A stretch of 58,046 bases of DNA from Octopus bimaculoides (Eukaryota): the NCBI RefSeq assembly GCF_001194135.2, contig NC_068985.1, positions 36,582,305-36,640,350 of the forward strand, written 5' to 3'. The notes under the pieces are model-generated. The model was not told where the DNA came from. It ran no database searches and saw nothing but the letters and a program-made list of their open reading frames with translations. Shown piece by piece: positions 2,962 through 51,216 of the stretch. The position numbers and the translations under genes were made by a program. The first letter of the stretch is position 1. The number at the start of each line of letters is the position of its first letter.

Positions 2962-3743
2962 TTGTGTATTTGTCTTTGTATTTGTCCTAAACCACCACTT
3001 GACAATTATTGTTGGTTTGCTTATGTCCCCATAACTTAGCATTTCAGCATAAGAGACCAATAGAATAAGTACCAGGCTTAACAAAGATAAGTAATGGGAT
3101 TGATTCATTCGACTTAGAAAAAAAAAAAAAACCCATTCAAGGTAGTGCTCCAGCATGGCCATTACCCAACGACTGAAATAAGTTAAAGATAAATTGACAA
3201 ATATCCTGCAAGTAAAACAGAACAATGTTAGAAACTATGGCTCTAAATCCTGAGAGAAAAGATTGTATCAGACCTTCAATGAGCTTCACTCATACTTTGT
3301 ACCTTTCCTCATGATTCAGACGTCTACCATTCTTTTGTTGGTAAACACTTCCTTTATTGTTTATATTCCAATTAAGGTCCCAGTAACTTATAATCATCAT
3401 CATCGTCATCAATTAATATTCACTTTTCCATGCTTCTAAGGGCTAGACAATCTGTTGAGGCGGATTTTCTATATCTGATGCTCTTCCTGTTGCCAATCCT
3501 CACCTATTTCTGAGCAAGCTAATATTTCCCTTTAGCCAGATATGTTTTCCATGGAAGACTAAAAGCGAACATCACTTTTATGATGGTGATTCTCATTTAG
3601 AACTATGTGAATGTGTATGCACATGTTCGTTAACATTTCTTAGATTGATGAAATCTATGAAATATGTTATCCTTTATTTGGAGAAGGAAATAAGGGCTTT
3701 TGCCAGAAGGGGCAAGCATGGAAAAATGAACTGATACAAAAGA

Positions 3744-18022: not shown

Positions 18023-18203
18023 TTAAAAACGTCCACTTCGGCCTTCTCTCTCTCTAGAACGAGATCGCCTTTGATTCCTTTCTCGGCTTCTTGAACGGGA
18101 TCGTCTCCTTTCTCGGCTACGACTTCTATTGCCACGACGTGGTTGCTCTTGGCTCCGGCTGCGACTCCTGCTGCGGCGTGTTGGAGGTGAACGGGATCTT
18201 GAC
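18023..18203 (-). CDS. U2AF1: U2AF1 exon 8, RS domain and stop (181 nt)
   Basis: gtttcccacag|GTCAAGATCC...TTTTAA; [17 protein letters not shown]...REGRSGRF*; within ORF 18023..18223. Confidence 0.96.
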
Positions 18204-21200
18204 CTGTGGGAAACACATTCCACAAGAAAAATTAGCTTACAAGTTAAAGTGCTGACATTTTAAACAACAAAATGCTGTGTAAATTTCAACTTACTTTCGC
18301 CGGCGCCGAGTTCTACCATATAATTCTCTACGAAGTTCACGAGAAATAGGTTTCAAATGCATGAAATTGCAAAATCCTCCACGAGTGCACTCTCTGAAAA
18401 GATAAAACCACTTGATTAAAACCAGCTAATGAGCAAAATAACGAATATTAAATATGAAGATATTTAAGTTACCTTACCCCATTTCATATTGACGGCAACA
18501 AGCTTCCCTAAAGTCAGTGACTGGTGATAATTCTGCATGAATTGGGCGGCCATTAAACCAACGATTATTTAAGTCCTTAACAGCCTTTTCAGCATCTTCT
18601 TCATAACGAAACTGAAATGAAATGATTAAGAAGTATAGCACTAACTTTCTCAAATAGTGACTGGATTAATGAATAGATCTGTATATTTACAAATTTTCAC
18701 ATAACCAGAAATTAGGGAAAATGATTATCAAGTAACTAGATCGATAACTCCAAATTCTGTTCATTTGCATGATTAATTATTTATTAAATTGTCCAGCAGC
18801 ATGAAAAAGATGAATTTTGTAAAGTTGTTTAGTGATGCTAGATTTGGTCAAATGATTAAAGGGAGATGTAAAATGCATCTAATTCAAGGTAAATCTAGGT
18901 GTTGGCAACCAGCTAAGAAAAGATGCTCAGCTCATGAACACCTGTTCAGAACTTTATAACTTTTTGTTAGCTCATGTTACTGTGTCACGCCACACAATGT
19001 CATGGCAAGAGCAATATAAAATGCTTTACTTGTATTAATCTTTTTTATACCAGTTGAAATATGCTTAATTTTGGTAGCCTGGCCACATGTTTACATTGAA
19101 CACCAACATTTTCCAGTAACTGAAGCATTACTGAACTGACTTTTATTGTATTTATATGGTAACTGACAAGCGAGATAAAACAGCATTAACCAAAAACATT
19201 CATGAACTCCTTATTTTTAACTTCCTCTAACAATATATAATTAAACAGGGAAAAAATTCTATGGCAAGAGTACATGAATGGTAGGGAGAAATCCAGTATA
19301 AGTTATTGACATTATTCTGATATCATTGTCACATGTTCAGGAACATCAATAAGATATATTTACATTTTGATAGTTCATTGAAACAGTCCAGCAAACAGAT
19401 GAACTATTACAATTTTTACTTTTGTTTCAATATACAGAAGCTTTATATATTAGAGGCAGGTCAAAATAGTGGAGTTGGTAACATGTACAGTTTAATTGAA
19501 ATGAACTTATTTTTGACTTCTGGAAAAAAGTGTGATTGGTTTTAAATACACTCAACATTTATTAATATTGTGTATCTACTACCACCACTGTTTCTGTAAT
19601 ATTTGCTTGAATGTTAACACTGGTACCCTAAAAACTGCTATAAACTAAGAAGTAAATTTTTTTAATTGAATCAATAAAAAAAAAAAAAGGGGGTTTAATA
19701 ACTGAGATATGCAGCTCACATGCTAGGTGTGCTATTGGTTAGATGAAGAACTAAACTAAAGTAATGGTTTCACAAAGCTACATCATCATTTAATGTCCAT
19801 GTTCCATGCTAGGATGTATGGGAGGGTACCACAAGAGCCAGCCAGGCTGAAGCCTGCACCAGACTTGTTATTGTTTTGGCAGGATTTTTACAGCTGGATC
19901 CCCTTCCTAACACCAACCACTCAGCAGAATGGACTTAGTGCTTTTTACATTGCACAAATACAGGCGAGGTCAGTATTGGAAAGGTTTTTACAGCTGGATA
20001 GTAACACAATTTCTTTCAAATACTGGATGCAGCAAATAAGGCAAACTAAACACATAGAAATATTTCCTCCAGAAAACTTTATGCTTGATATTAAATCAAA
20101 TATGAGGCCTGATCAATAAATATCCGGACTGTTGCCATAGTAATGCACACATTTCAAGTAGCCCTATTTGCCTTAAGCTTAAAAAAAAAATTTTTTTTTA
20201 AAATCTAGTTTATTTCCAAAATATTCCATTCTCCATTTCATAAAACTCCTTGCACTGATAGGAACTTGCAAGAATGATATGCAAAAAGAGGTGGAACTAA
20301 AAACATACATGGTTGGTTAAAACCTTACTTTGCAATCTCTTTATCAAAACCATTAAAAAGGCTGGTCTAGAGAGAATTAACATTTTGCTAGAATGTAAAT
20401 AAAACATTTTAGATTGCATGAATGGATATAGGTTATGTGATATCCAAAGCAAATATTAAAACTACAAAACTAAAATTCTTATGGAAAAAAAAAAAGCTTA
20501 CCTTAACATATACATTGCCAACAAGATGATCACCCAGATTATCGCATACATTCATCTCTTCTATTTCACCATACTATAAAAAAGGGGGAATATGTTCATT
20601 AATAAACACACAAGACATTACATTATAGTCAACAATTTAAATATCAAAAAAGAAAGAAAGACACTATATGAAACCAAACTTCTTAATGTCATTAACTTGA
20701 GACTTTCTTACATATCAAAATGTACAGATTGACATAATTTACAATTGCTTCTTACAAGTTTTAATGCTTAATGAAATTAACTCAAATGGTTATTATCATG
20801 AGAGTATTCCAATATTTTTTTTAATTGGTTGCATACAATTACTTTACAGTATTGATGGATAAAAACAGTTAAGGAAATAGACTAAAGGGAACAAAATGCC
20901 AATATATATATTGATAAATTTATATATGAACATTAGCAGAACCAACTAAATCTTGTATATGTAGCATGTTGATTGAGCAAGCCTACTTTAAACATTTGCT
21001 CATTTTATGTTTGACATCAGTTCATGCACTAAAATTTGAATTTTACTTGAATAATATTTGCTATAAAATCACAACAGCACATTTAGTAGCTGAATTGACA
21101 GAAGAAAAATATTCCAAGAATTAGAACATAAGTGAAGCATAATAAGTACTCCTTTGTGGTCAAAAGTCTGGCACATAAAGACTTCAATCAATCAATAAAA

Positions 21201-24200: not shown

Positions 24201-27200
24201 AAATCAGAACTTAAATAGCATATGTACTAGTGCTTAGTTTAACAGTAATTAAATGGTATAAATATTAAAGAAGTTTTAGTGAAGCTGTTAGTAGAAGTCA
24301 CCAGCATCAAAGATTAGTCAAGATCAAAAACAAAATACAATAGTATTTTTTTTTGGATTAATTTTGAAAACAAACTTAAATTTATTAGTAATTATTGTTT
24401 GTGGCAGCAACATCAAAGCTTAATATTGCAACAGAAAAACAAGGTTACCTTTTCCATTTCTACATAAACCTCTTCAAAGAATTCATCATAGTGCTGTTGG
24501 ATCTCAAGCTCTCCCATTTGGACTAAACGAAAACAGAGCACCAGCAGATATAGAATAGTGGGATAACAATTATAATACCTATAACCAACAGGCTAGGAGG
24601 AGCACTACACTAGGAATTAGAGTACAAAATAACTATTTTAACAGCTTCAAGTCAACAAACTGAAAAATAATGTATGAAGGAAACAAAAGCTGTAAAATGA
24701 AGTGCATTAGTTTGGGCTGAAAAATGTATGCTAGATGAGTGGAAATGGTATTTTGAATTGTTTAAGTATTTTTATTACAAAAATAATGTGAAACAAGTGC
24801 TTTATTGTAATCTTTAGAAAAATTACAATAAGAAATATCATTTCCACTCAAACTGATCAAATAATCCAACGTTTATCTGCAAATGAAAATAAAAATTAGT
24901 TATTTGAAAAATATTTTTACCAGAGAATGGTGAAAATGACGTACTGGCTGTAAAAGTTGTAAAGCATGATTTGAAAGGTTATTAATTAGAAAACAGAAGA
25001 AAAAAAAAAAAAATCTTTATATCAGCCAAAAGTACTTAACCACCAGCATTCTCTGGTAATAGAAATCCCAAAATTTACAACATGGAAACAATAAGGAAAG
25101 GAAGGAAANNNNNNNNNNGGAAACAATAAGGAAAGGAAGGAAATGAATGATACATATTTCATTTAAATATTTTTGCAAAGAATATCTTGTTTCCATGATA
25201 CAAATTCTGGACTGAAATATTTAGAGCAAGAACAATGAGGAAAAAAAAAAAAAAAAATTGCAAAATAATTGTTTGTTTGTCCTGTGCTAGCGCTGAAAGG
25301 AAAGCAAGAAAGGAGGGTTACCTTGTCCTCTATTTCACAAAATACCTCCTCGAAAAAATCATCAAAATCCTGTTGCGCTTCAACATCGTCCATTGTCACT
25401 GAAAAGAAGTAACAAACATGAAGATATTCCTTCATGGCACAACAGGGAAGGAATGTCATAGTGGCAGTTAAAATTTAGATAGAATAATGGGACAAGAAGC
25501 TTGTAGTTGATTTATAGTGACTAAAGTAACAGGAGGATAACTTGGGACTTGTGAAGATTTCCCCTCGTTTATACAATCCTTGCAGCGTCATGTTAGTGCA
25601 CAGAATTTAATTAATAACTCAAGATCCAAGCAGCGTTAAGGAATTACAGATTATTAAATTTATCGAGATCCACTGTGCAGCATTAATGGAATATGTATAA
25701 TATGTATTTATACAGAATGGAAATAGGAAGGTATTTATCACAACATCTTAAAGTCCAGTTAAAATACTAATTCAACTTAGATTCCTCTGCAGTGCTCAAG
25801 AAGAGAGGTTCATTAGGTATGTCGAGTAATAACAAAACAAAAATAGTGAACCACTAAAAGATTTTTTCTAGACTTTATACCTTAGCTTAACATGCATTTC
25901 AACTATATACATTGCCAAACACATTTTGAGGTTTTAAACAGGTAGAAATGTTTAGTATAATTCTTTTAAAAAATCCACACTATTTGCATGATAAAAAAAA
26001 AAAAGGAATAAAATGAAAACTAAGAATAAAAAAAAAAACCGATTGATGAGGTGAAGATATATTCATGAATATTGAAGTGATTTTTCTCAAAAGAGAATGA
26101 AAATCAGTTTTCAATTTCGTATTGTCACAACGACAAAACTTGTCAAAGTAAATGAAGATTAGAAATAGTAATATATATATATATTTAAATGGTTGCATTT
26201 AAGAGGGGTCAAATTAGTCATAGATATTATAATATATAAAAAACAAGAGTTTGCTTTTGAATCAGTTCTGATCAAGGTTACCTTAATATTTTTGTACTAA
26301 TTATTTTAATATTCCATTGACGAGAACAAGCTGCTAAAATAAGTGCTACTGGCTGCAAGATATTTTTCTTGTTGCCCCAGAGCTAACTTGAATGAATGTG
26401 TTCAAGGATTACAATAGTGAAGAAATCTTAAGTTAAGGAGACAGCTAAGCTAAGTTGATAAAATACCAGAAGAAAAGCTGCTTTAGGGAGCAGTGAACAT
26501 TTACCTTGCTGTCAATCACTGAGCAAGTTAAGCATACAAAGAAAAATGACAAATTGATGATTTTTTAATACAAAAAATGAAAACATTGTATTATGGACAA
26601 TTGTACTATTTTAAAAAATAAATAAATAAATAAAGGAAAGCATAAAAATCAACAAAATACAAGAAGCAAATAATATAAGGATTATATGTAATATGATTTC
26701 ATAACAGCATGGCAATCTTAAGATTTGGCTGTCTAAGAAAGAAAATGGTCAAAACCATTTTATAGATTATAGTTATATGTTTAAAATAATTTTCAATTGA
26801 GTTAGGAAGGAGTGTGTGTGCACGTAAGTATGTGTTTTAGAAACTTCAATTTGATTAGAAATTAGTTGCTGGTACTCCTTCCAAAGGATCACATTGTAAC
26901 TTAAATAATGATATTGCAACAAATCTGGTATTGGTGGTCTTCAAGTAATGAATTCAATGATTCTGAATATAAAATTACAAATCAAATGAAATGATTGCCA
27001 GGCTTTTATGAACACTGCTAAAGCAATAAAAAGAATAAGGCTAATGATAAAGAACACCATGTGGACAAATACAACAATGAAGAATAACAAATAGAAAGTG
27101 ACAGATCCAAAGACATGGAGACAAAGAAGCTGTGTGAAAGTGTTGAAATGGTCACAACAACTAGTAAAACACAAAGACACAGCTTCAAAATTTAGAAGCC

Positions 27201-28515: not shown

Positions 28516-30625
28516 TATATATAACCCCACACAAAATTCTCTCTTAAATACAAACACAGCATGCAAGAAGACAATATTGCAAACAAAAATAGAAACCAAT
28601 GAAAAATCCCCCAAAAGTTNNNNNNNNNNNNNNNNNNNNNNNNNNNNNNNNNNNNNNNNNNNNNNNNNNNNNNNNNNNNNNNNNNNNNNNNNNNNNNNNN
28701 NNNNNNNNNNNNNNNNNNNNNNNNNNNNNNNNNNNNNNNNNNNNNNNNNNNNNNNNNNNNNNNNNNNNNNNNNNNNNNNNNNNNNNNNNNNNNNNNNNNN
28801 NNNNNNNNNNNNNNNNNNNNNNNNNNNNNNNNNNNNNNNNNNNNNNNNNNNNNNNNNNNNNNNNNNNNNNNNNNNNNNNNNNNNNNNNNNNNNNNNNNNN
28901 NNNNNNNNNNNNNNNNNNNNNNNNNNNNNNNNNNNNNNNNNNNNNNNNNNNNNNNNNNNNNNNNNNNNNNNNNNNNNNNNNNNNNNNNNNNNNNNNNNNN
29001 NNNNNNNNNNNNNNNNNNNNNNNNNNNNNNNNNNNNNNNNNNNNNNNNNNNNNNNNNNNNNNNNNNNNNNNNNNNNNNNNNNNNNNNNNNNNNNNNNNNN
29101 NNNNNNNNNNNNNNNNNNNNNNNNNNNNNNNNNNNNNNNNNNNNNNNNNNNNNNNNNNNNNNNNNNNNNNNNNNNNNNNNNNNNNNNNNNNNNNNNNNNN
29201 NCTTCTAAAAATGATTTTTCTAGTTAATTTCTTTCAAAATGACATAACACTAAGCAACCGCTAAAAGTTATGGAATAAAAAAAAAAAATCAATTAAAAAA
29301 ATGTCAACTAAACAAAAATTTGCTATACAAATTCTTGCTAGATGAACTAAAGTATAAAATTTTCATATACACATCCACTAATATCAAATTAATTTGACCC
29401 AAATTGTACTGTTTACATTTAAAGAGGTTTTTAGATCTTTCAATATTTCAATCATAAACAGTCTATAAATAATCGAAATATCTGCTTAGCTTCCAACACT
29501 GGAATTTTATAGTTTGATATTACATGTGTTCTATGATTTAAGACAGAACATACTTCAATTATAGGTACCCCTTTGTCTCAATATGTCATGCAAACAGCAC
29601 AAATTGGTCTGGCTGGCAGAGAGATAGTGGATCACCTAATTATTGGAATAATCAAGAGTAGATAAATACAACCAGCACAAAATGTCTTGTCAAAAGACAC
29701 ATTTTCAGTAAAAGTTTAATTTACATTCCCTGAGTGTACTAATGTATTAATTTATGTATTATTGACTAAATGTCCAAAACACTGTAAAACGAGTGAAGTG
29801 ATTTGGACATTGAGTCCCTCGTCTTTCCTGGACACTCTCCCTTAATGTGGTATTTTGACCCTTTTTTAAAAGATGGAGTTAAAAAATCATGTTAGTTCAT
29901 AAGTGAGTGCACCAGCCATTTGAAACATTAAATGTCCCGGTTCTTTAGTGATTTGCAGAGTGCATGGGCCAAAAGTTGCACATGTAACATAGGGGCCATT
30001 GAAACAAAGTTCTAAAATCCATCCCCCTAGCTTGGTTTCCATTTTGGCATACTGTGAATAAAGCCCCGTTTGTTTCCTTCTTTTTCATAAACTGTGATAA
30101 GGAACTTTTCAGCTTGTCTTCTTTTTGATCTCCAGTTGCTCACCATTTCTATTACTGTCACACCAAACTCATTTGGCTGCACTTTCTTTTCGTATACTTG
30201 ATTACTTTCAGTGTGAATTTCGCATAGTTCTGCTTTCTCTTCTGTGACATGATGTTTGGAATATATTTACAGTTTTATAAACTGATGAGCAGGAATGATT
30301 TTATTTTTATTGACTAACAAAGAACGCTAACTTAAAATGTGTAAAAACTAATTACACAATCTTTTTATTGTATTTTAATTGCCATATTTAATATTAAATT
30401 AACCTATCAGCCAATTAGAACACACCTAAGTTTCACCACACATCCACTTATTGATGCATTGTTATGTCAGCCAATTAACATCAAGGGGATGGGGGGTCTG
30501 AAGCCATATTGTTAGTATGTCCAGTTTGCATTACTCACTAACATCAAACGTTAATCCAAAAAGAGGCAGAGTTTGCTCAATTTAATCAGATAATGAAATA
30601 CAGGAGATTGCAAACTGGAGAGAAA

Positions 30626-30676
<51 letters not shown>

Positions 30677-33600
30677 AAAGAAAAAAAAAGAAACTCATTA
30701 AAACATTTATGTATTCTTTTTAATGTTTATCCGATTTGTCTTGTAATGGATCATAGACTGCCACTTACCTGTTTCTAATTCCGGTCCAAAATTGAATGTT
30801 TAAATGCAGTCGATCAAAAACAAACAAAAATGCCTATTAATTCATTTTATTTCATATTTTCCGCAATAAAATTTTAAAAAATACTAATGTAAGAAAATAT
30901 TAATGTTGGGTATCAATTGAGAGTACATTTCACTAATTAAACAGCTATGATGAGCACTGTCATTTCACCAAGTGACAGTGAATTTAAAGCTCAAATGGCT
31001 GGTGCACTGCTTTATGAACCGACATAATTTTTAAAAAATCCCTTAAAAGATATATCTGATTACTAGGTCTTGTGTATATGACAGCCCCAGTTGATTTTTA
31101 ACCCTCAACCTGATGGAAAAATCAAATGGTAAGGGTTGATGTACTGAATGGAGTACGTAAAATTTTCCTTATAGAAATTTGACTTTTAGTTGGGAAAGAA
31201 AACAAAAACCTAGCAGTAATTGTTAACAACTCTTAAGAAAAGGTAAGATAATTGCAAGAAATAAAAAATAAAAAAAAATAATAATAATAAAAAAAACATG
31301 CTTACAGGAAAATTTTTGTATGTCAAAAGGAATAAGTCAGTAATTTGAAATGTAAAGTATACCTATTTTGGATAAACATACAATTTTAAAATCACTGTAA
31401 AGTGTAAACAGTGGTTTACACCAAAGGCTCTTGTCACCGTGGAAAGAAAACGCAGGATTATCTAACTAGTTTCTAGTCTTCTTAACCTTAATCAGAGAAA
31501 GTATCCATCTGTCCACAAAGCGGATTAGGAGCTTAGAGCTATTTACAGTGTATGGAAAATAGGGATTCAATTAAACTGGTCCTGCTCATTTGCATAACAG
31601 TTCATGACCCGATATGCTTAATATATGATACAGCATTTTAGATAATTTTGTAATGTATGCCATTTTGTTTTGATAACCATAATAGTAAAATAATAACCCT
31701 GTTGTCAGCATATGCTTTATTAACGCAAGTTAAACAAACCAGTCGAACTGACTTCTAGTTTCTATACACTAAAGTTATAAGCAATCACTCTTTACGTGAA
31801 AAGATGAGTATATTTTCTGTTTATGGTCTAAGACTCAAAACTAACCAGATCAATCCCACTTTTTGTCTACAGAAAGATTAAAACCAAATGCAACCACTAT
31901 TTTTTACAGTAATGCTAAAATTGTATGTTTATCAGAAAGAGGTTTGCCATATATTTCAAATTATCCAAAATACTATGCAGTGCATTATTAAATAGTTCAC
32001 CTAGTGGTTTGTCATTAGAAAGTGTCCAATTCTAAACTATTTAAAAACCTCTTAAAGTTCTTGTTTACATTCAACACAACAAACTAGGAAGGGACCTAAC
32101 TTGACATAAAGTAAAAGATCACACATTTCCTATTCCTTTAAAACAAAACTTCCTAAACTGCTAATCTGCCAAAACTTAGAAATAAAGGCCTTTTTAAACT
32201 TCTAAAATTTCTGTAACATCAGTTAAAAGTAATATTTTTTAAATGTTTTAAAAATGATTCTAAACTTTATTTCTAATTAAGGATTTTTATCAAATATACT
32301 ATGAAGAATAATGTAATTTCCAAAAGAAAATAATTTTGAATATTATTTAAAACACTTTATTCAAATTTTCATCGTTCTGCAATATTTTGATAATTTTTAG
32401 ATTTACAAAAATAAAATAATGCATTTGCCATATTACTTAAGCTGCATTTTAACGAAAATAAGTTAAATTGTAGTCATAAATAGAAAAAAAAAAAATACAA
32501 ATCAAATATTTCAAAAAAATAATTTGATAGTTTCAGTTTAAGACAGAAAGAAACCTAATTTTACACACTATTATTATTATATACCTATCATTAGGTCTAC
32601 TAAGCCCCTGTAAAATGATAGTATTTACACTAACTGTGCTTATCAGATTAAAGAAAAAAAAAAAAAGGGCTATTTACTAATTGGCACAAACTTCCATAGG
32701 CTTCCAGGATAGGATGATGAATGACTTACCAGGAACTGCAAACAAAAAAAAAATCACTATATGAGGGGGCTCGCAATTTTGATTTCTTACACAGAAATGA
32801 TACAATATTAAAATAACATCCATATATACATTATTCAATATATAAATTTTATATAACAGAGTTGAAGGAATACTCTGAACTGAAATTATTTTAAAACTGT
32901 ATATGGAAATATTTTATCATTAAAGAAACTTGTAGTGTTGCTATCATAAAATGTAACAAAAGGTTTATCACCAATACTTACTATGAGAGCCATCAGCTGT
33001 AAGAGCAGCATTTTGGGGATTTAGGTACAGATTCTGTAGCAGTACTGTCTATATGAAGAAAGAAAAAAAAACAATTGTTATGAAGATGCTTATAACTAAT
33101 TTTTCATTCATAAAACAAATCAACAACACTCATGCTTTAAATTCCTCTTGTACTGCTTTCACTATCACTACATTGAAAATATTCAGCCAGAAAGCAGAGT
33201 AGCTACGAGGTAAAAGTAGTGAACAATACTGGCTGCTTGATCATGAACTTAAATACTCTGCCAATTAAAATGTAATGGCTCTAGTAAAGGCATATAGCCA
33301 TTTGCTAAATATTCATGGTTGATAAATAGCACATCAACTTCATGATAAAATACAAGTAGAATCCAACAAAAATACTTGCTTCATTATGACTTGTGACATA
33401 CAAAGCCACAATGTAAAGTGGGGAGGTAAGACAAGCAGGCAAATATAAGTAAAAGCAAAATATCCGAAACAATCTATAGATGCAGCCGTAGCAGTGTGGT
33501 TAAGAAGTGCAACCACATGGGTTCAGGTAGGTCTCATTGCTTGGCACATTGAGCAAGTGTCTTCTACTCTAGCCATTGTCCAACCAATATCTTGAATATG

Positions 33601-36600
33601 GTAGATGGAAGACTGTATGGAAGCCCATATAAATGTCTATCTTTTGTGTTTGTCCCTCTGACTGCTTGACAACCAGTTACAACCCCATTGGCAAAAGAAG
33701 CAGATAGAGTTAGGAAAGAAAAGAAAAATTTAAAAAAAAAGAAGTACTAGTGTCTATTTGTTTGACTAAACTCTTTGAGGCAGCATCCTTGCATGGCCAG
33801 TTCAATAATGACTAAAACCAGTAAAAGATGAAAGATAACCTAACAATAAAGAACATTGCAAACCTAAGTTTTAAAAGCATTCAAATGTTTAATATTTATT
33901 TCTTCTATAAACATAAAGTTAATAATTGAAAAGGGATTATATATTCAGACAAAATGATGCCAGAGTATTTCAGGTGCTTATTTTAACCTTCAGATCCAGA
34001 ACAAAGAGAAACAGCATTAAATGCTGTAAGTTATCTAATTTGATACCACACTGTTTCTGCCAAATTGCAGTCAGTATATTTTAAACATTACCATATGAAA
34101 TCAGTTTATGATTAATTATTCATGTTTTAATGTCTGTTAATTAGAACCATGTGGAGAGCCAACCATAATAATTGTGGTAATATATTGCAGAATAAAGGCG
34201 GCAAGCTGGTAGAAACGTTAGCATGTCGGGCCATCTTTATGTTCTGAGTTCAAATTCCACCGAGGTCAACATTGCTTTTCATCCTTTCGAGGTTGATAAA
34301 CGAAGTACCAGTTGCATACTAGAGTCATCTAATCACCCCCACCTCACCCCGAAAAAAAAAAAAAAGAAATTCAGGCCTTGCATCTAGAGCAGAGAAGAAT
34401 CTATTGCAGAATAGCCTAAAGTAACTGTCAGGTGGAACAAAGAATTTACAGTGTCACTCACAGTTAATCACAACATAAGGTTCACACACAGACACCAACA
34501 AAATTTACAGAAAATTGAATAAGCTAAATAAAATAAAAAGACATAGGTGTGACTGTGTGGTAAAAGTTTGCTTCCCAAGCACATGGTTCTAAGTTCAGTC
34601 CCACTGCATGACAAAAAGGGCAAGTGTCTTCTTTGATAGCCTTGGGTCAACAAAGACTTTGAGTGACTGAAAGACAACCAAATATATGTGAGTGTTTACG
34701 TCCCCGTAATTTAGCAGTTCAGCAAAAGAGACTGGATAGGATAAGCATTAGGCTTAACCTTTTCGATACTGACCCGGCCGTAGCTGGCTGAAAAATTTTT
34801 TGGTTCATAAGACCAACCCAGCCGTAGCAAGCCGAGAGTACCCATTGTTATTGAAATGTGAATTTAAGCACAAATCTTCTTAGTACATTTGTGAAAATGT
34901 GTGATTTCACTTTGTAAATAGTTGAGTTATAGTATCCATTTGAAAATGGATAGGAGTTACATGCTATCAAGCAGTGATTCCAAATTTAAGGGTTTTTCAA
35001 CGGAAAATATGGAGATATCGAGAAAAAGAATGAATGAGGTACAAAAGCACATGGTGTACGAGAATGAATAGGATATTTTTGTATCCGAAACCAAAAGCAG
35101 CAATAGTGACATCAAAGACGATTTTACATTGGAATAAAGTACAAACTTTAAAAATGTTTTTATTAGCAATTTTTCTGAGATGGGGTCTATCCATAGTCTT
35201 TCTTAGGAAGCAAAACCGTTAGACTTTTTGAAGAGATCACTGCGGAAACAAACAGTATTTGCCAGAAAAGCCCATGAAATGGGGGAATCTAAGTTTGGAA
35301 AATTTGTGAAGCAAATACTGGGTACTGCTGTGGATTTAGTTTTTATACAGGGAAAATAATGTTAGTCAGCTTGGGTACAATGTGGTCTGGAATTTATCAC
35401 TTCCATACCATAACCAGGGCTGTATATTATTTTTTGACTGATTTTTTTTTAGTTCGATGAAACTTGCAGTGGATTTCAGTATTTCAGTTTATTTCACCTT
35501 TATGGGTCACCTGTTCTGTTGTGCATTAAATTTCAACTGATAATCTAGTGATGTGCACAATTCTTCTGTATCAAAATTTAGTTGCATACCCAATTGAATA
35601 TTAGCTGAGGATTCATTTTCAATGGTGATGTTTAAACAAAATTTTAATAATTTTACCTTGTGCTCAGTTTATCTGGATTTACCTGTAATTAGAGTCACTT
35701 TGAGATAAAAGTTATGCAATAGAATTGATTAAGTACCCATTCTTTAATTATGTTCCAAATATCACATATGTTGATAAGTAAAAAAAGTTTCAGTTGCTTA
35801 ATGAAACTAGTCTAAATTCATGATGATTTTAGAATTTAATTGAAACTCATGAGGGGTGTATTTTGGTCAGAAATATAGTAACGAAAGGGTTAAGAAAAAA
35901 AAACTGGGGTTGATTCATTCAACTGACAATGTTTCAAAATGATGTTCATATTGAAATAGTGCAACAGCTTGAGTAGGTTGAAAAAAAATGAGAAAATAGC
36001 AAAATTTACATACCTGACTGAAAGTGGGTTTGTTGTGCAGGCGAGAACATCTTTCTCCATGTCTACAAGCTCCAATTTTGAAGTAAAAGGAACAATTAAC
36101 CCTTGAAAGGAAATTAAACACAAGTAAATTCACTGAAAACGAAATCATATGCCAAATAAAGGAAAGTAAAACAGCTTTCAAATTAGCATAAAAAATAATG
36201 ATTACCACTGAAATTTCTTTTGTGAACATTAAAATCATTCACTACCATTAACATATCTTTACTAAAATTGTATACATGTTAGCACTATGAAAAACAAAAC
36301 AGTTTCATAGCATGATTAAGAAATCATACAATATAGGAACTGCACTCGGCCACAAGAAAATGGTATGTCATTTGGAGTACAACAATGTTATTAAGTGGAG
36401 TCATGGTTTCAGAATAAAGCCATTAAGATTTTATACCAGTGTAATAAGAATGGCTAAAAAGAATGTCAGCTTTTATTTCATGAATGCAAAAAGGGAAAAA
36501 CAATCCTTAATTATAAAACAGTAGCCAATAAGATGGATTGTACATGGAATTCAAAAAGGTATAGCCTTTTCACATAGTTTCATGTAAATTCAACTTGGGA

Positions 36601-39129
36601 ATTATGGCATATATGTCTGTGGGATGCTCAGCTATTTGTATCTAACAAATGAATCCCCATTGGCAAACAACAGAAATTCACCACTGCTCCTGTACACTGT
36701 AACCGTGATGGACTAAGTAGCCTTCTGACCGGGGAGAATGTTGGCCAGCAGGATGGCATCATTTGAGAGCTAAAACAATGCAAAGCACATATGACCAGTG
36801 ACATATAAACGACACCCAAGAGTTTGGTTAATACTGTATTTAGAGGTCACACTAAAGTAAGAGCAATAATAAATCTGAAGTGAAGAGTACGTGGATTTAA
36901 ATGGCAAAAAAGGAAGACCATCCAGAAATATAACAATATCTAGGAGAGTATTGTAGCTCGCTTGAAGCATTGTCTGTTTCAACACACGATTTCACATCGG
37001 GAATATTGTATTATCTATAAAACAAATTCATAAAAATAAAAAAAAATTGGGGAGGAGAGGAAGTCTTTCCCTCTATACTTCTGCCGAGTACAAATTTATT
37101 CTTATACAAGAATGTTGTTGACAGTAACTTTGAAGAGTTGGCTAGCTAAGCCATTGTCACAGATTTCGAAGAATAACAGATAATGAATGATATCAATCAA
37201 AATAATGGCTCACCTTTCTGAAACGAGCTTTCAGAGTAATTTCCCGCAGTAATATGACAAAGTGAAATTAAAGTGTTCATTCATATCGTGTGTGCAAATA
37301 AATACACGCTTTACTTGTGGCAATAATGCCGTTTGTTTTTAAAAAATCCATTATTTTCTCTGGAGCAAGCTGCTTCAATATTTCCTCAAATGAACACTTT
37401 AATTTCACTTTGTCATACCACTGCGGGAAATTACTCTGAAAGAAATCTTTTCCGAAATGCGAATAGATTGATTACATATTTCTTTCATTATATGATTGCA
37501 GTTTTGTGAGATTTGGCTGTTATTTCTAGCATGTGAATAGCCTGCTTGAAGGCCAAGGCCGTAGAATCGGGGGGGAGAGGAGCAATTGAAATTTTGAAAA
37601 ATTTTGGTAAATTTTCAAATTANNNNNNNNNNNNNNNNNNNNNNNNNNNNNNNNNNNNNNNNNNNNNNNNNNNNNNNNNNNNNNNNNNNNNNNNNNNNNN
37701 NNNNNNNNNNNNNNNNNNNNNNNNNNNNNNNNNNNNNNNNNNNNNNNNNNNNNNNNNNNNNNNNNNNNNNNNNNNNNNNNNNNNNNNNNNNNNNNNNNNN
37801 NNNNNNNNNNNNNNNNNNNNNNNNNNNNNNNNNNNNNNNNNNNNNNNNNNNNNNNNNNNNNNNNNNNNNNNNNNNNNNNNNNNNNNNNNNNNNNNNNNNN
37901 NNNNNNNNNNNNNNNNNNNNNNNNNNNNNNNNNNNNNNNNNNNNNNNNNNNNNNNNNNNNNNNNNNNNNNNNNNNNNNNNNNNNNNNNNNNNNNNNNNNN
38001 NNNNNNNNNNNNNNNNNNNNNNNNNNNNNNNNNNNNNNNNNNNNNNNNNNNNNNNNNNNNNNNNNNNNNNNNNNNNNNNNNNNNNNNTTTTTTTTCATAT
38101 TCGTTTTCCACACACTTGTTAACCCCCCCCTCTCCCCAGGGTGGCTTATTATTATTATTATTTTTTGTTTCCGGGTGAAAGCCTTTATATTGACCATCTA
38201 TTTCTGCCAGCCGAATGAATAAAATAGCATTTAACATTTTTATTCTTGCAAGTGGTGCCCTAGATATTACCTCATAAAAATCCAAAATTTACACTGCGCC
38301 ATCCCACAAATATATAAATATACTGCATTTTAGGTTGTTTGGAAAATATTCTTCTAGAATAGATATTTAGTAAATCAAAAATAATCTAGGGTTTTGTTGT
38401 TATTATTATTAAAGCGGCGAGCTGGCAGAATTGTTAACACACCAGGCAAAATGCATAGCATTTCGTCTACACACACACATATATGAAAGCTAATCGCAAT
38501 TAATTCAAATATCTAATACTAATAAATTTTTAACTTAGTAACAAAATCATTTCCCCCTATCTCCCTCTAAACTTAGCAAGCTACTGTGACGAACATTGAA
38601 AATAACTTGTAATTAAATTATCATAATTTATGTCATTTCATTTCATTCCTTATCACTTTAATCCTATACGAATGTCGCTATGTTCCTTGTGACTGACTGA
38701 AAAGAAGTCAATATTAACCGACATAATTTATTCACATTATCATCGATTATTTTCATGAAATGACTTTAACACATGAAAAACTAATATTTAAAAAAATAAA
38801 ACGTAATGCTTTTAATTAAAGGATTCCATACAACATAAAGGGAATCATCTTCATTCAATATTTATAACAAAGAGATTTTTTTTTCCCGTGAAAATATTTC
38901 TCGACAGAATATCAAATAAATCTGATAAATGGAAGCGGTAAACTGTTACACAGCATACGACGAAAGAAATATGAACAAAGCTCCTTCCATATAAGTCAAT
39001 AACAAATAGAGAGTGGTATAAATAACAGAAAGATACATAAGAATAAACATATGAGATATAAAATAAATTTGTATAAATGAATTACTTGTCCTTTTCTGTG
39101 CCAAAAATTGATGCAAGATACTCAGCCAT
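18023..39129 (-). CDS. U2AF1: Splicing factor U2AF small subunit (U2AF35): complement(join 39129..39086, 36101..36014, 33048..32982, [optional 32735..32730], 25398..25322 OR 24522..24449, 20573..20502, 18611..18478, 18393..18295, 18203..18023); 252-255 aa depending on isoform
   Basis: The spliced product reads [44 protein letters not shown]...[35 protein letters not shown]...[55 protein letters not shown]...RS domain...RSGRF*. It has two CCCH fingers, a UHM and an RS tail. All junctions are GT-AG and in frame. Confidence 0.97.
18295..18393 (-). CDS. U2AF1: U2AF1 exon 7 (99 nt), ZnF2 end
   Basis: tcttttcag|AGAGTGCACT...CGAAA|gtaagt; [32 protein letters not shown]. Confidence 0.96.
18478..18611 (-). 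CDS. U2AF1: U2AF1 exon 6 (134 nt)
   Basis: catttcatttcag|TTTCGTTAT...ATGGG|gtaagg; [44 protein letters not shown]. Confidence 0.96.
20502..20573 (-). CDS. U2AF1: U2AF1 exon 5 (72 nt)
   Basis: cccttttttatag|TATGGTGAA...GTTAAG|gtaagc; [24 protein letters not shown]. Confidence 0.96.
24449..24522 (-). CDS. U2AF1: U2AF1 alternative exon 4b (74 nt, phase 1 to 0), paralog of 4a
   Basis: ctctgttttcgtttag|TCCAAATGGGA...GAAAAG|gtaacc; [24 protein letters not shown]. Confidence 0.9.
25322..25398 (-). CDS. U2AF1: U2AF1 alternative exon 4a (77 nt, phase 1 to 0)
   Basis: ttcttttcag|TGACAATGGAC...GACAAG|gtaacc; [25 protein letters not shown]. Confidence 0.92.
29880..30250 (-). mobile_element. Pogo/Tigger-like transposase remnant (CENP-B/Tc5 HTH region)
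   Basis: Frameshifted translation [63 protein letters not shown] resembles the pogo N-terminus ending in FKASxGWxxxF. Confidence 0.65.
32730..32735 (-). CDS. U2AF1: Predicted 6-nt in-frame U2AF1 microexon (TTCCTG)
   Basis: Minus strand gtgattttttttttgtttgcag|TTCCTG|gtaagtc; near-consensus acceptor and donor only 6 nt apart; frame-preserving (GSH-IPV-TM / GSH-IPV-QM). Confidence 0.7.
32982..33048 (-). CDS. U2AF1: U2AF1 exon 3 (67 nt)
   Basis: ttcttcatatag|ACAGTACTG...TCTCATA|gtaagt; [22 protein letters not shown]. Confidence 0.95.
33480..33830 (+). mobile_element. Older diverged copy of the same SINE family
   Basis: Degenerate head and tail matching 43822..44460. Confidence 0.7.
34758..35889 (+). 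mobile_element. Internally deleted piggyBac-family DNA transposon (1132 bp) with TTAA TSDs
   Basis: TTAA at 34754..57 and 35890..93; termini CCTTTTCGATACTG / CCCTTTCGTTACTA (11/14); remnant [55 protein letters not shown] at ~35250..35470. Confidence 0.88.
36014..36101 (-). CDS. U2AF1: U2AF1 exon 2 (88 nt), ZnF1
   Basis: cctttcaag|GGTTAATTGT...AGTCAG|gtatgt; [29 protein letters not shown]. Confidence 0.96.
37228..37442. repeat. Near-perfect inverted repeat, 54-bp arms, 107-nt spacer (U2AF1 intron 1)
   Basis: 37228..37281 vs reverse complement of 37389..37442 match 52/54. Confidence 0.92.
39086..39129 (-). CDS. U2AF1: U2AF1 exon 1 coding part (44 nt)
   Basis: aagATGGCTGAGTATCTTGCATCAATTTTTGGCACAGAAAAGGACAA|gtaatt = [14 protein letters not shown](K). 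Confidence 0.96.
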
Positions 39130-47273: not shown

Positions 47274-50200
47274 ATGGATCTCCGAAGAGTGAAAGATGAT
47301 GTCAAGTTAGATTTATGCCGGACATATTACAAAGGTAATGTTAATGGAGAAGAAACAGGGTGTATGAATAAAATAGATAATGTAACTAGCAGATAATAAG
47401 CAATTAAAGAAGAAACCACGAAGATAATGAGGCATAACAGTTGTCAGTTAATCCCCATGTCAGGTCTGTTCAAAGTTGTTTCAGCTGTGACTAATATGTC
47501 ATTTTGTATGTGAATGTCTACACTGTCAAGTATCTCCTTCCTTTTGAAAAGTGAGAGAAATATGGTTACTATAACTAGCAGGTTAAGTGATCATATAGAA
47601 GCTTTTGAAGTTTTGACTGGAAGGGTATCCAAGTATAAGAGTCTCTTGCTTTACAAGACAAAGTGTCCAGATTTATGAAAACTAATCCATTCACGTGACA
47701 CGTGTGTAAATAGAGAGATCTACAAAGAGTTATACTTGAGGCATTTTTGAACCTGTAAGAAGGCCATTCACTAGATTTTGCCCTGGAGAGAAATTCTTGT
47801 AGACAAAAAGGTGTAATTTAGGTAGAAAATAATGAATGAGTGTGGTAGCAGTGAAATAATGATTTTGAAAATAGACACTTTGATGACAGCAATATTTTAT
47901 TATAGTGTTTATTGTCTTTCAGGTGGTTTTGCACTCCTGCCATTCTTATGGTTTATTAACTTCCTGTGGTTCTTCAGAGAAGCTTACCGCCGGCCAGAGT
48001 TTGAACAACAGAAACAAATCCGTACATGTAAGCAGCTATTTCGATTTGCTTTCTTCACTTCATTACTGAGTTGATATGTCTTCATGTATTTTTCTTTGAA
48101 ATAACAGAATCAATGAGGACTTATAATGATTGAAAATTAGAATAGTGATTATGTTAACAATAATAGTGATAAGTAATAGTTTCAACTATCATTTTAAACA
48201 TAAACCATCATCACCATTTAACATCTGTTTTCCATGCTGGCATTGGTTGGGCAGTTTAACAGGAGCTGGTGAGCTAATGGACTGCATGAAGCTTCAGTGT
48301 CTGCTCTGGTACAGTATCTATGGCTGGATGCCCTTGCTAATGCCAACCATTTTATAGGGTGTACTGGGTGCTTTTTACATAACCTTGGCACTAGTGATGT
48401 CACCGAGTAACTCACAAGACCTCTCAACTGAGTGGAGGGAGTGATACTATGCCAAGTGGTGAGAAGTTAGAGTATGATAAAGGGGCAAGAACAGGTCTCT
48501 TAGTGGTACTTGGAGATCCATCTACTTTCATCTCAAATACCCAAATATATATGCACATAACACGTATAAATTACTCAGCATTAACAAAATATCTCTGTTG
48601 CAAATGACTCACACTGAGTTACTAGTTTAATATTGCTTATTCTCAAGTTATTGGCCTACAGGAATAAGAGTCACTGGAACCATTTAGCTGACACTAATTC
48701 TTTTGACAACTTGCATAAAACTGTAACTGGTTCTGAAGCAAAGCCTATTTTTAAAGCATTCATATCTAAATTAAATACTTTGAAGATTATTGCTTGTTCT
48801 CTTTTTTTTTTTACTTTATTTTTCACTATTTCACAATAATTCTTCCATGTTCACATAGATGGGATGGTTTTAGTTTTTCTTGGTGCAGTTAACAGCTGGT
48901 TGCTTTTCTTACTACCAACCACTTTATCATTAACCTTTAGGAGACGGCAGGGCTGATCTATTGGCCAAAAAGTTGAATAACGAAGAAGATTGCATTTGTT
49001 CAATTTCATACAAGAATATATATAGTTTTATATATGTAAATGGATTACTTTATTTTTTTAATAATTTTTTTTGAAAAATAAGTGCATGCCCTCTGTAGGG
49101 CTTGTGAAAAGGGCTGTATCTTCTTGGCACTGAGACTCCAGATGAGGCTCCATCTCCAAAGGGTTAAATAGGTGTGGAACCTGTTAGAAAACTAACAGTG
49201 TTTAGGCATTGAAGTTGAAGGTGTGATGAGTTTAGGCAAACTATCATGGGATTTTAATCTTTTTTTTACCATATTTCTAATGAAATGCACTGCTTTGTGT
49301 GTTTCACTTAATATGGTAAATAATGAAGTTGTTGAAATTGAGTAAAGTAACTTTTTCCTTTCAAGATTATGAATGAAATATTTAGTTTAGATATGAATGC
49401 TTTGAAAACAGGTTTTGTTTCAGGACTGGTTACAGTTTTATGCAAGTTGTCAAAAGGATTAGTATCAGCTAGTAGCTCCAGTGACTCATACTCTTGTAGG
49501 CCTATAACTTGAGAATAAGCAATCAAATGTCCAGGCTGTTTTACAGCCATAATATTGTATTCCTGATTCTTCTTTTTTTTTCTGAAGAACAAAGCTTCTT
49601 TTGTAAAAGGAAGGAACTAACTTGATCTCAATATAATATTGTTACCTATTTTAAATTGTAAATGGTAGTATATCGGTAATAAAAAATGCTGTAACAGTAA
49701 ATCTACTTGGCTCAGTTTATCTGGTTAACACCAGATTTCACCTCTAGCTGAAGTGTGTAAGGCTATCCAGCTGTAAAAACTATTGCTGAATGTGCTTCTT
49801 CAAGTTCACCATCCCCCAGACAACATATTATACAGTCTGTTAAGTGTATGTAAATTTACTAGGTCTTATTGTGAATATTATACTGGAGTAATAAGATCTT
49901 CCTTGGCTGTATTAAGAAATGTGCTTTTCAACTACATGGTTTCAATCCTACTGCATGGCATCTTGGACCAGTGTCTTCTACCATTACTTCAGAATGTTCA
50001 AAACCTTTTGTTTGAAATTTAGTAGATGAAGCCATATGGAAGCCCACCAGAAGGATCATTTCTATTTTTGATTGGTAAACATAATTTGTCATTTGTTTTA
50101 GCACCACCACCTGGCCTTTGGAAACCTTTAACTGTGACCATAGTGGTTGCTGCAAGTTTTCAGACTAGATCTCTGGTTTGAGGATAACTTCCTCTCTTTC

Positions 50201-51216
50201 TCCTACCAGTTTCAGAGGCCCTGAAGAGAACCATTGGTGCTGCACTTCCTCCTCTGACCAAACAGAAAATAAGAAGCCTGGCTGTTGTCTGATTCATTAG
50301 TTTCAAATATCTTTGTATATTTACTTTATTTGATGGCATAAAAGATGCATGAGCATATTAGACACCCCAATTTCAGCAGTGCATCATCATCAACATCATT
50401 TAACATCCATTTTTCCAGTGCTGGCATGGGTTGGACAGTTTGATAGGTGGCTAACTGAAAAGCTGCACTAGGCCCCAATTGTCTGTTTTTGGTATGGCTT
50501 CTACAAGTGGATGACCTTCCTAATGCCAACCTTTTACAGAGTATACTGGGTGCTTTTTATGTGGTGCTAGCATAGGTACTTTTTCATGTGGCACTGGCAT
50601 GGGTGATTTTTACCTGGTGCCAGCATGGATGCTTTATACATGGCACCAGCATGAGTGGTTTGTACTGCCTTTTATGTGGTGCCAGTGTGGGTGTTTTGTA
50701 CGTGCTCTGTATGTGGTACTGGCACAGGTACTTTTTACATGGCACCATTCAAGGAAAAATGGTTTTAGTGCATTAAAACTTAAAAGAAGCCCAACTGCAC
50801 ATAGGACCAGAGGTGATTTCTTTTGAAACAGTCTTTTGAAGACAAGTGCATCTTACATGCCATCAAATACAGTATGTTTAGATTTGTATCTAAAGATTAG
50901 GATTGAGCTTTTCTCTGTCCTCTTTACACTTTTGGATATACTTTCTTAATTGACAAAAATGAAAGTACAGATTAAGGAAAGTTCCTAATTAAAAAGGAGT
51001 TGTGCTTATTGAAATTTAACTGCTAAGGTGGAAAAATTTACTTATTTGTTTCTTCTCTTTTTCTTTTTCTTTTCAGATGTTACTCGTTCATTGATTGGGT
51101 CTTTGATCTGGTTCAGCATCATGATTATATGGATTATAATTTTTCAGATGAAACGAGCTGAATGGGGAGCTGTGGCTGATTACATGTCTTTCATCATTCC
51201 TACAGGCAGAGCATAA
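47274..51216 (+). CDS. PSENEN: Gamma-secretase subunit PEN-2, join(47274..47334,47923..48027,51077..51216), 101 aa
   Basis: [101 protein letters not shown]. Exons are 61/105/140 nt with GT-AG junctions, and the PEN-2 [10 protein letters not shown] and C-terminal DYxSFxIPxG motifs are present. An acceptor (ttcttctag) 2 nt before the ATG implies an upstream non-coding exon. Confidence 0.96.
48633..49522. repeat. Diverged inverted repeat with ~145-bp arms in PEN-2 intron (48633..48778 and 49377..49522)
   Basis: ORF-track translations of both arms share [31 protein letters not shown] on opposite strands. Confidence 0.85.
48934..49163. mobile_element. TTAA-flanked MITE (piggyBac-type), 230 bp
   Basis: TTAA both sides; TIR CCTTTAGGAGACGG / CCCTTTGGAGATGG (11/14). 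Confidence 0.7.
50385..50745 (-). mobile_element. RTE-family 3' tail with degenerate 26-bp minisatellite (PEN-2 intron)
   Basis: Same tail and ttttatgtggtgc.agcatggg repeats as 11145..11770. Confidence 0.75.

Follow-up and report, generated by a model that had tools for sequence, protein, structure and literature searches.

U2AF35, the small subunit of the splicing factor U2AF, recognises the AG of almost all 3′ splice sites. A 58,046-nucleotide (nt) stretch of the Octopus bimaculoides genome (NCBI RefSeq assembly GCF_001194135.2, contig NC_068985.1, forward-strand positions 36,582,305–36,640,350) carries the complete gene for this protein, U2AF1, on its minus strand. We call this whole stretch the window, and all octopus coordinates below refer to it. 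Within the gene, two related exons, 4a and 4b, lie side by side where a single exon 4 might be expected. Are both exons real, when did the second copy arise, and what does exchanging one for the other change in the protein? We find that 4a and 4b are a genuine, frame-enforced either-or exon pair. The history that we favour, at a probability of about 85%, is that the 77-nt exon 4 of U2AF1 was duplicated in tandem long ago, in the mollusc stem lineage. The two copies would then have been retained as mutually exclusive exons that exchange the entire acidic helix A of the UHM, the RRM-like domain of U2AF35.

Exons 4a and 4b in octopus U2AF1

Both exons lie on the minus strand and both have the hallmarks of functional splicing. 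Exon 4a (25322–25398) has the ancestral length of 77 nt, follows the acceptor ttcttttcAG, and codes for (M) plus 25 residues that form the more acidic version of helix A. Exon 4b (24449–24522) is one codon shorter at 74 nt, follows the acceptor ttcgtttAG, and codes for (I) plus 24 residues of an alternative version. The two acceptors are pyrimidine-rich, the two exons use the same donor, AAG|GTAACC, and each is entered in phase 1 and left in phase 0. In the assembly, 799 nt of intron separate them. The copies are 66% identical in DNA and 52% identical in protein, and each aligns to human U2AF1 residues 67–92 in a tblastn search of the 58-kb window (E = 6e-5 and 1e-4 for the two). Directly past the 4a donor, at 25292–25321 of the minus strand, there is also a pyrimidine tract ending in AG (GTAACCCTCCTTTCTTGCTTTCCTTTCAG), which resembles an acceptor ∼29 nt into the intron.

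The reading frame permits one exon or the other. Exon 5 (20502–20573, minus strand; 72 nt, 24 residues) is the common downstream partner of both, and joining exon 3 to either 4a or 4b and then to exon 5 leaves the frame open to the normal stop. Including both exons leads to a TAG within 4b (24460–24462), and skipping both leads to a TGA at the beginning of exon 5. The lengths of 77 and 74 nt both leave a remainder of two when divided by three, and the frame survives single inclusion only. In either faulty product the premature stop sits several exon junctions upstream of the last exon. An earlier sequence-only reading of the window had proposed the pair together with its coordinates, lengths, phases, acceptors and common donor, as well as this frame rule; every one of these particulars was recovered in our analysis.

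The surrounding gene is the octopus U2AF1 (U2AF35) orthologue, as shown by its domain order, its matches to known structures and its exact RefSeq identity. We delimited its exons, all on the minus strand, by tblastn with human U2AF1 and by reading splice sites. Exon 1 (coding part with the start codon, 39086–39129) and exon 2 (zinc finger 1, 36014–36101) precede exon 3 (32982–33048), which is 67 nt long and ends in phase 1. Exons 6 (18478–18611), 7 (18295–18393) and 8 (18023–18203, ending with the stop) follow exon 5, and together (18023–18611) supply what remains of the UHM along with zinc finger 2 and the RS domain. Two Pfam zf-CCCH stretches and RRM_1 score above their cut-offs in both octopus isoforms, and the RS-rich C-terminus is apparent from the translation, so that the UHM lies between two CCCH zinc fingers and the RS tail comes last. 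The protein matches Schizosaccharomyces pombe U2AF23 (PDB 4YH8, E = 1e-78) and the human U2AF35 UHM (PDB 1JMT, E = 5e-49). The 4b product spliced directly from exon 3 is identical to XP_052824283.1, the O. bimaculoides splicing factor U2AF 35 kDa subunit isoform X1.

Exon 3 deserves separate mention, as the sequence-only reading had held it to be single. It is the sole exon 3-like segment found by tblastn in the window, where a 582-N gap in intron 3 (28620–29201), which touches no known exon, could hide another copy. The two tandem 67-nt exon 3 copies of the vertebrate Ab/3 type are absent from octopus U2AF1 as assembled.

Age and distribution of the pair

The pair is not an octopus peculiarity. 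Genomic loci of Pecten maximus, Gigantopelta aegis, the chiton Liolophura sinensis and Crassostrea virginica each carry 4a and then 4b between exons 3 and 5, and a mytilid contig holds both exons in the same order. In all mollusc loci that carry the pair, 4a is 77 nt and 4b 74 nt long, and the intron between them spans 458–1249 nt. The phases are as in octopus, and including both exons or neither gives an early stop, in all four of the further mollusc loci that hold exons 3 and 5. Each of the five mollusc loci covering exon 3 has one copy of it, and no annotated mollusc isoform differs in exon 3. RefSeq lists a-type and b-type proteins as alternative isoforms in Octopus, Crassostrea, Pecten, Mercenaria, Gigantopelta and Sinanodonta; in the last five of these genera the a-type shows the pattern [TC]ELEDK. 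Since the pair occurs in Polyplacophora, Bivalvia, Gastropoda and Cephalopoda, we date it to the mollusc stem.

Outside the molluscs, the annelid Capitella, the brachiopod Lingula and the nemertean Lineus have one 77-nt exon 4 and no pair, and exon 4 is likewise single in amphioxus and vertebrate genes. The sequence-only reading had implied a novelty at the level of octopus or cephalopods and had suggested looking for the pair in other cephalopods, molluscs and annelids. The novelty at that level is lost, as chiton, bivalves, a vent snail and octopus have the pair in common; the search found it across four mollusc classes and found none in Capitella, Lingula or Lineus.

The heterobranch snails are the exception within the phylum. 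Lymnaea stagnalis (locus L009, 10443–11517) and Elysia chlorotica (locus L012, 7126–9682) have one a-like 77-nt exon 4 and no trace of 4b in the searched region before exon 5. The simplest history would be a single duplication in the mollusc stem, after which 4b lost one codon and was later dropped altogether in Heterobranchia, where its absence would thus be secondary. At some columns the sole heterobranch exon 4 resembles b or the ancestral exon, with Tyr at column 11, Glu at 13 and Val at 20.

Sequence comparison indicates that both copies have been maintained as protein-coding exons. Protein identity is 81% among a copies, 84% among b copies and 56% between a and b; copies cluster by type, not by species. 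Seven alignment columns have non-overlapping residue sets in a and b, and all b copies share the one-codon deletion. Across ten orthologous species pairs, non-synonymous differences per site amount to 0.084 (a) and 0.089 (b), and synonymous differences to 0.80 (a) and 0.75 (b), which is saturated. Low non-synonymous against saturated synonymous divergence places both exons under purifying selection, in agreement with what the sequence-only reading had supposed. Both have therefore been kept as coding sequence since the mollusc classes split, which argues against either being a pseudo-exon or a pure decay trigger.

The same comparison bears on a different history, in which the pair would be recent or lineage-specific (arising in octopus or in cephalopods) or would have been repeatedly re-created or homogenised by gene conversion. 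The donor shared by the two octopus exons could hint at local conversion. However, a and b group by type instead of by species, all b copies have both the one-codon deletion and a tAG acceptor in common, the a-then-b order is identical in six loci, and the octopus copies are only 66% identical in DNA. From these sequence data, this history is effectively refuted, and we give it very little weight.

Nor does the pair seem to be a product of the assembly. A gap of 10 N (25109–25118) falls within the 4a–4b intron, with the 4a donor ∼200 nt upstream of it and the 4b acceptor ∼590 nt downstream. A perfect 25-nt direct repeat (25084–25108 and 25119–25143; 100% identical, 35 nt start to start) brackets the gap, an arrangement that fits overlapping contig ends joined by a scaffolder. 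A gap with duplicated flanks between 4a and 4b is what one might expect if the second exon came from a mis-joined or duplicated contig. Yet what is duplicated at the flanks is 25 nt of intronic and not exonic sequence, the exons themselves differ by one codon and at 34% of their bases, both exons are found in RefSeq proteins, and five independent mollusc assemblies as well as one mytilid contig contain both. On the strength of the cross-species loci we regard the artefact as refuted, its probability being close to nil. No exon or reading frame crosses the gap, and the uncertainty is confined to the intron length. Nothing coding has been lost there, as proteins built from the exons on either side equal RefSeq entries residue for residue.

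Automated annotation has captured the mollusc pair, yet as far as we searched it has not been discussed in the literature: full-text searches returned no description of it. A Pinctada paper in which both U2AF and mutually exclusive exons appear is about U2AF2 and not the U2AF1 pair. Gene models of Mytilus, Nucella and C. gigas (K1QZ58) string 4a and 4b together in one protein of 259–280 amino acids; such fusions are very likely mistakes of annotation, since the frame would shift if both exons were truly included.

One further feature of the locus also recurs in other species. PEN-2 (PSENEN, a gamma-secretase subunit) lies head-to-head with octopus U2AF1 in three exons on the plus strand (47274–51207), and an opposite-strand PEN-2 neighbour is called at the Pecten, Crassostrea and Lineus U2AF1 loci as well. 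This shared neighbour makes the arrangement an old microsynteny.

Helix A, isoforms and exclusive choice

Exon 4 encodes UHM helix A of U2AF35, as judged from alignment and structure prediction. The sequence-only reading had made the same assignment, and three observations bear it out: the alignment to human residues 67–92, a helix predicted by AlphaFold2 at residues 71–89 within exon-4b residues 67–91 (local predicted local distance difference test score, pLDDT, 66–76), and the acidic content, which runs from 8 to 11 of 24–25 residues across exon 4 versions. In U2AF35, the acidic UHM helix meets the basic tail of the U2AF65 ligand motif and supplies the glutamate that closes the tryptophan pocket (PMC5113200). 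Helix A also runs beside helix α6 and the zinc fingers (PMC5224494).

The two versions differ in ways that are conserved. In all six species compared, 4a has 10–11 acidic residues and 4b 8–9, so that 4a is the more acidic by one to three. Relative to the outgroups, the derived states of 4a are Ala/Gly at column 7, replacing a large hydrophobic residue, and Asp/Glu at column 10, replacing His; those of 4b are Tyr for Phe at column 19 and the absence of column 24. Compared with 4a, 4b has Ile/Leu in place of Ala/Gly on the hydrophobic face and one residue fewer at the C-terminal end of the helix. Where 4b has His/Phe, 4a has Asp/Glu, and a helical wheel places this position on the acidic stripe; columns 10 and 24 share that stripe with the conserved glutamates. 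We infer that a and b may differ in their electrostatic grip on U2AF65 and in the helix-to-strand loop. Both proteins would be functional U2AF small subunits, differing at the U2AF65 ligand motif, at the flanking zinc fingers, or at both.

The choice between 4a and 4b is combined with a second source of variation immediately upstream, where two 6-nt microexons in intron 3 extend the loop that precedes the helix. The first, mu1 (TTCCTG, 32730–32735, minus strand), is flanked by tttgcAG and GTAAGT; the second, mu2 (AAACAG, 30769–30774, minus strand), by AG and GTAAGT. Inclusion of mu1 turns GSH-I/M into GSH-IPV, and inclusion of both gives GSH-IPETV, inserting PV or PETV into the loop immediately before helix A. 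Where exon 3 meets exon 4, RefSeq entries of O. sinensis are longer by precisely these two or four residues (IPV, IPETV), and the mu1 junction CATA|TTCCTG|TCCAAATGG occurs exactly in two marine metatranscriptome contigs of another cephalopod (L001 and L002).

Isoforms assembled from the window match annotated proteins. Exon 4a with mu1 gives XP_029636792.1 (O. sinensis X3) and XP_014773175.1 (O. bimaculoides, earlier release), and with both microexons XP_036359212.1. Exon 4b with mu1 gives XP_029636793.1 and XP_014773176.1, and with both microexons XP_029636791.1 and XP_014773174.1. An a isoform spliced straight from exon 3, with neither microexon, had no match in the protein collection. Together, 4a/4b and mu1/mu2 account for at least five annotated isoforms. 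Because these isoforms are exact RefSeq entries, the 4a/4b choice is already annotated for octopus U2AF1, and the notion of an unannotated pair does not hold.

Several features of the same region stand apart from the exon pair. A long U-tract precedes mu1, with UGC directly at the acceptor (uuugcAG), like a motif reported upstream of neural microexons. Intron 3 contains two inverted-repeat pairs, one of 45 nt (29879–29923 and 30991–31035, 84% complementarity), which brackets mu2, and one of 61 nt (31341–31401 and 31903–31963, 82% complementarity); these may be small-transposon ends or a looping structure. In C. virginica, an alternative exon 3 donor 6 nt downstream (CATA|GTAAGT|GTATGT, locus L007, ∼3661–3667) adds Ser-Lys at the point of the octopus microexon insertion, and the resulting GSH-SK-L/F isoforms occur with either 4a or 4b. 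Proteins of the hemichordate Glandiceps (P0046 and P0043) have a similar SK variant.

How would inclusion be limited to one exon? Steric exclusion is ruled out, as the introns between a and b are too long. The tandem, homologous exons Ab and 3 of vertebrate U2AF1 have equal phase and lengths that three does not divide, and transcripts with both or neither acquire stop codons and undergo nonsense-mediated decay (NMD; PMC5224494). By analogy, mollusc transcripts with both exon 4 versions or with neither would be removed by NMD. The frame rule combined with this predicted NMD step is the supported mechanism of exclusivity. The exons also differ slightly in their acceptors, which end in tAG for 4b in six of six species and in cAG for 4a in five of six. 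We considered whether cAG (4a) versus tAG (4b) could be a systematic self-recognition signal; the mytilid 4a uses tAG, and this is a tendency only.

The two exons are probably not used equally. All the transcript-derived cephalopod sequences that we found (in Logan and JGI) carry 4b, with mu1; cephalopods besides Octopus are represented here by anonymous transcripts only. The single-isoform gene models of many molluscs are also b-type. These two observations make 4b the probable default and suggest that it is the major form, with 4a minor, restricted or condition-specific.

Such uneven use invites another explanation, namely that 4a is a minor poison or decoy exon that lowers U2AF1 output through unproductive 4a+4b splicing, as an autoregulatory NMD switch. 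The exclusive use of 4b in cephalopod transcripts would suit this, as would the stop that double inclusion produces in every species examined. Autoregulation by NMD is, moreover, common among splicing factors. The vertebrate Ab/3 exons of U2AF1 itself provide a case (PMC5224494). However, the 4a protein is 81% identical across mollusc classes although synonymous sites are saturated, a constraint that a pure NMD trigger would not need. The a-like exon is also the only exon 4 kept in heterobranchs, and Octopus, Pecten, Crassostrea, Mercenaria, Gigantopelta and Sinanodonta all have annotated productive isoforms with a alone. We therefore consider a poison-exon role for 4a unlikely and prefer a pair of protein-coding alternatives.

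A number of points weigh against an ancient, mutually exclusive pair with distinct helices, and they are best considered together. For octopus, the support for 4a being used comes from RefSeq (Gnomon) models and from conservation. Searches of transcripts and metagenomes retrieved no independent cephalopod transcript bearing 4a: a search with the exon 3-4a-5 peptide yielded short fragments belonging to many phyla, with no 4a transcript of a cephalopod among them, and a metagenome scan with a degenerate a-type pattern returned one mytilid genomic contig and no spliced message. The decay of products with both exons or neither is predicted from vertebrate Ab/3. At the octopus locus we found no convincing docking/selector complementarity, the search yielding only AT-rich, low-complexity or transposon-like inverted repeats. 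Conserved intronic k-mers did not exceed shuffled controls. An Rbfox-type motif ((U)GCAUG) was not found in octopus; GCATG does lie 100–150 nt downstream of 4b in three of six species, octopus not among them. Heterobranchs live on an a-like exon alone, and the two forms may be largely interchangeable. Finally, the structural argument is weak. The AlphaFold2 model of the b isoform is of low confidence (mean pLDDT 51) and served for helix boundaries only, and the placement of residues draws on helical-wheel geometry and on Glu88 as the putative pocket glutamate.

Other duplicated exons and the meaning of the mollusc pair

The closest known parallel is vertebrate Ab/3, which gives isoforms U2AF35b and U2AF35a. 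The likeness is considerable: the gene, the UHM domain and the frame logic are the same, and the vertebrate variants also lie in or beside helix A (α2). The exon is different. Vertebrates duplicate the 67-nt exon 3, which encodes RNP2, a loop and the helix start and has seven residue differences between copies, whereas molluscs duplicate the 77/74-nt exon 4, which encodes the helix A body and has ∼12 differences and a one-residue deletion. All mollusc loci examined have one exon 3, and vertebrates have one exon 4. The ages differ accordingly, the mollusc pair being of mollusc-stem and Ab/3 of vertebrate-stem age. With exon 4 single in annelid, brachiopod, nemertean, amphioxus and vertebrates, and exon 3 single in molluscs, an independent origin follows, and the proposal of the sequence-only reading that a different exon had been duplicated independently is upheld.

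The nemertean Lineus longissimus provides a third case, again of independent origin, in which an exon for the N-terminal half of the U2AF35 UHM has been duplicated in tandem; it was seen in the present analysis and not taken from the literature. Its U2AF1 has two tandem 67-nt copies of exon 3 (locus L008, 3773–3839 and 3879–3945), and RefSeq isoforms X1 and X2 differ at this exon (NLYI versus QLYM). As in vertebrates, and unlike in molluscs, exon 3 is the one duplicated; exon 4 is single and fused to exon 5. The copies are only 39 nt apart, too short an intron to be spliced, which would make joining them sterically impossible; this mechanism of exclusion is unlike that of the mollusc pair.

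Mutually exclusive exons that stem from tandem exon duplication form a general class (Kondrashov and Koonin 2001; Letunic et al. 2002; both cited in PMC5224494). The mollusc pair resembles this generic type in having adjacent homologous copies with the same phase and their own splice sites, which present a structural element on an either-or basis. It differs in that introns of 564–1249 nt between the copies rule out steric exclusion and no docking/selector pairing was found, exclusivity apparently depending on frame and NMD.

A broader interpretation can be offered only tentatively. Tandem exon duplication may have made the helix A region two-state at least three times independently, through exon 3 in vertebrates and in a nemertean and through exon 4 in molluscs, and the a and b forms might constitute distinct U2AF heterodimers that steer different 3′ splice sites in concert with neural-type microexons. 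If so, what sets the mollusc a and b proteins apart would be their affinity for U2AF65, their stability or the way in which the zinc fingers are positioned. We regard this as conceivable but rather doubtful.

The mollusc pair is convergent with the vertebrate one, phylum-wide, and placed at the core of helix A. For binding and splicing assays it offers sharper variants than the vertebrate pair, with ∼12 substitutions, a charge difference and a one-residue deletion, and the loss of 4b in heterobranchs supplies a natural control. A second, independently evolved switch that exchanges the entire partner-binding helix, and that four mollusc classes have retained since their common ancestor, amounts to a natural replicate experiment, and it argues for selection on a two-state U2AF interface as such.

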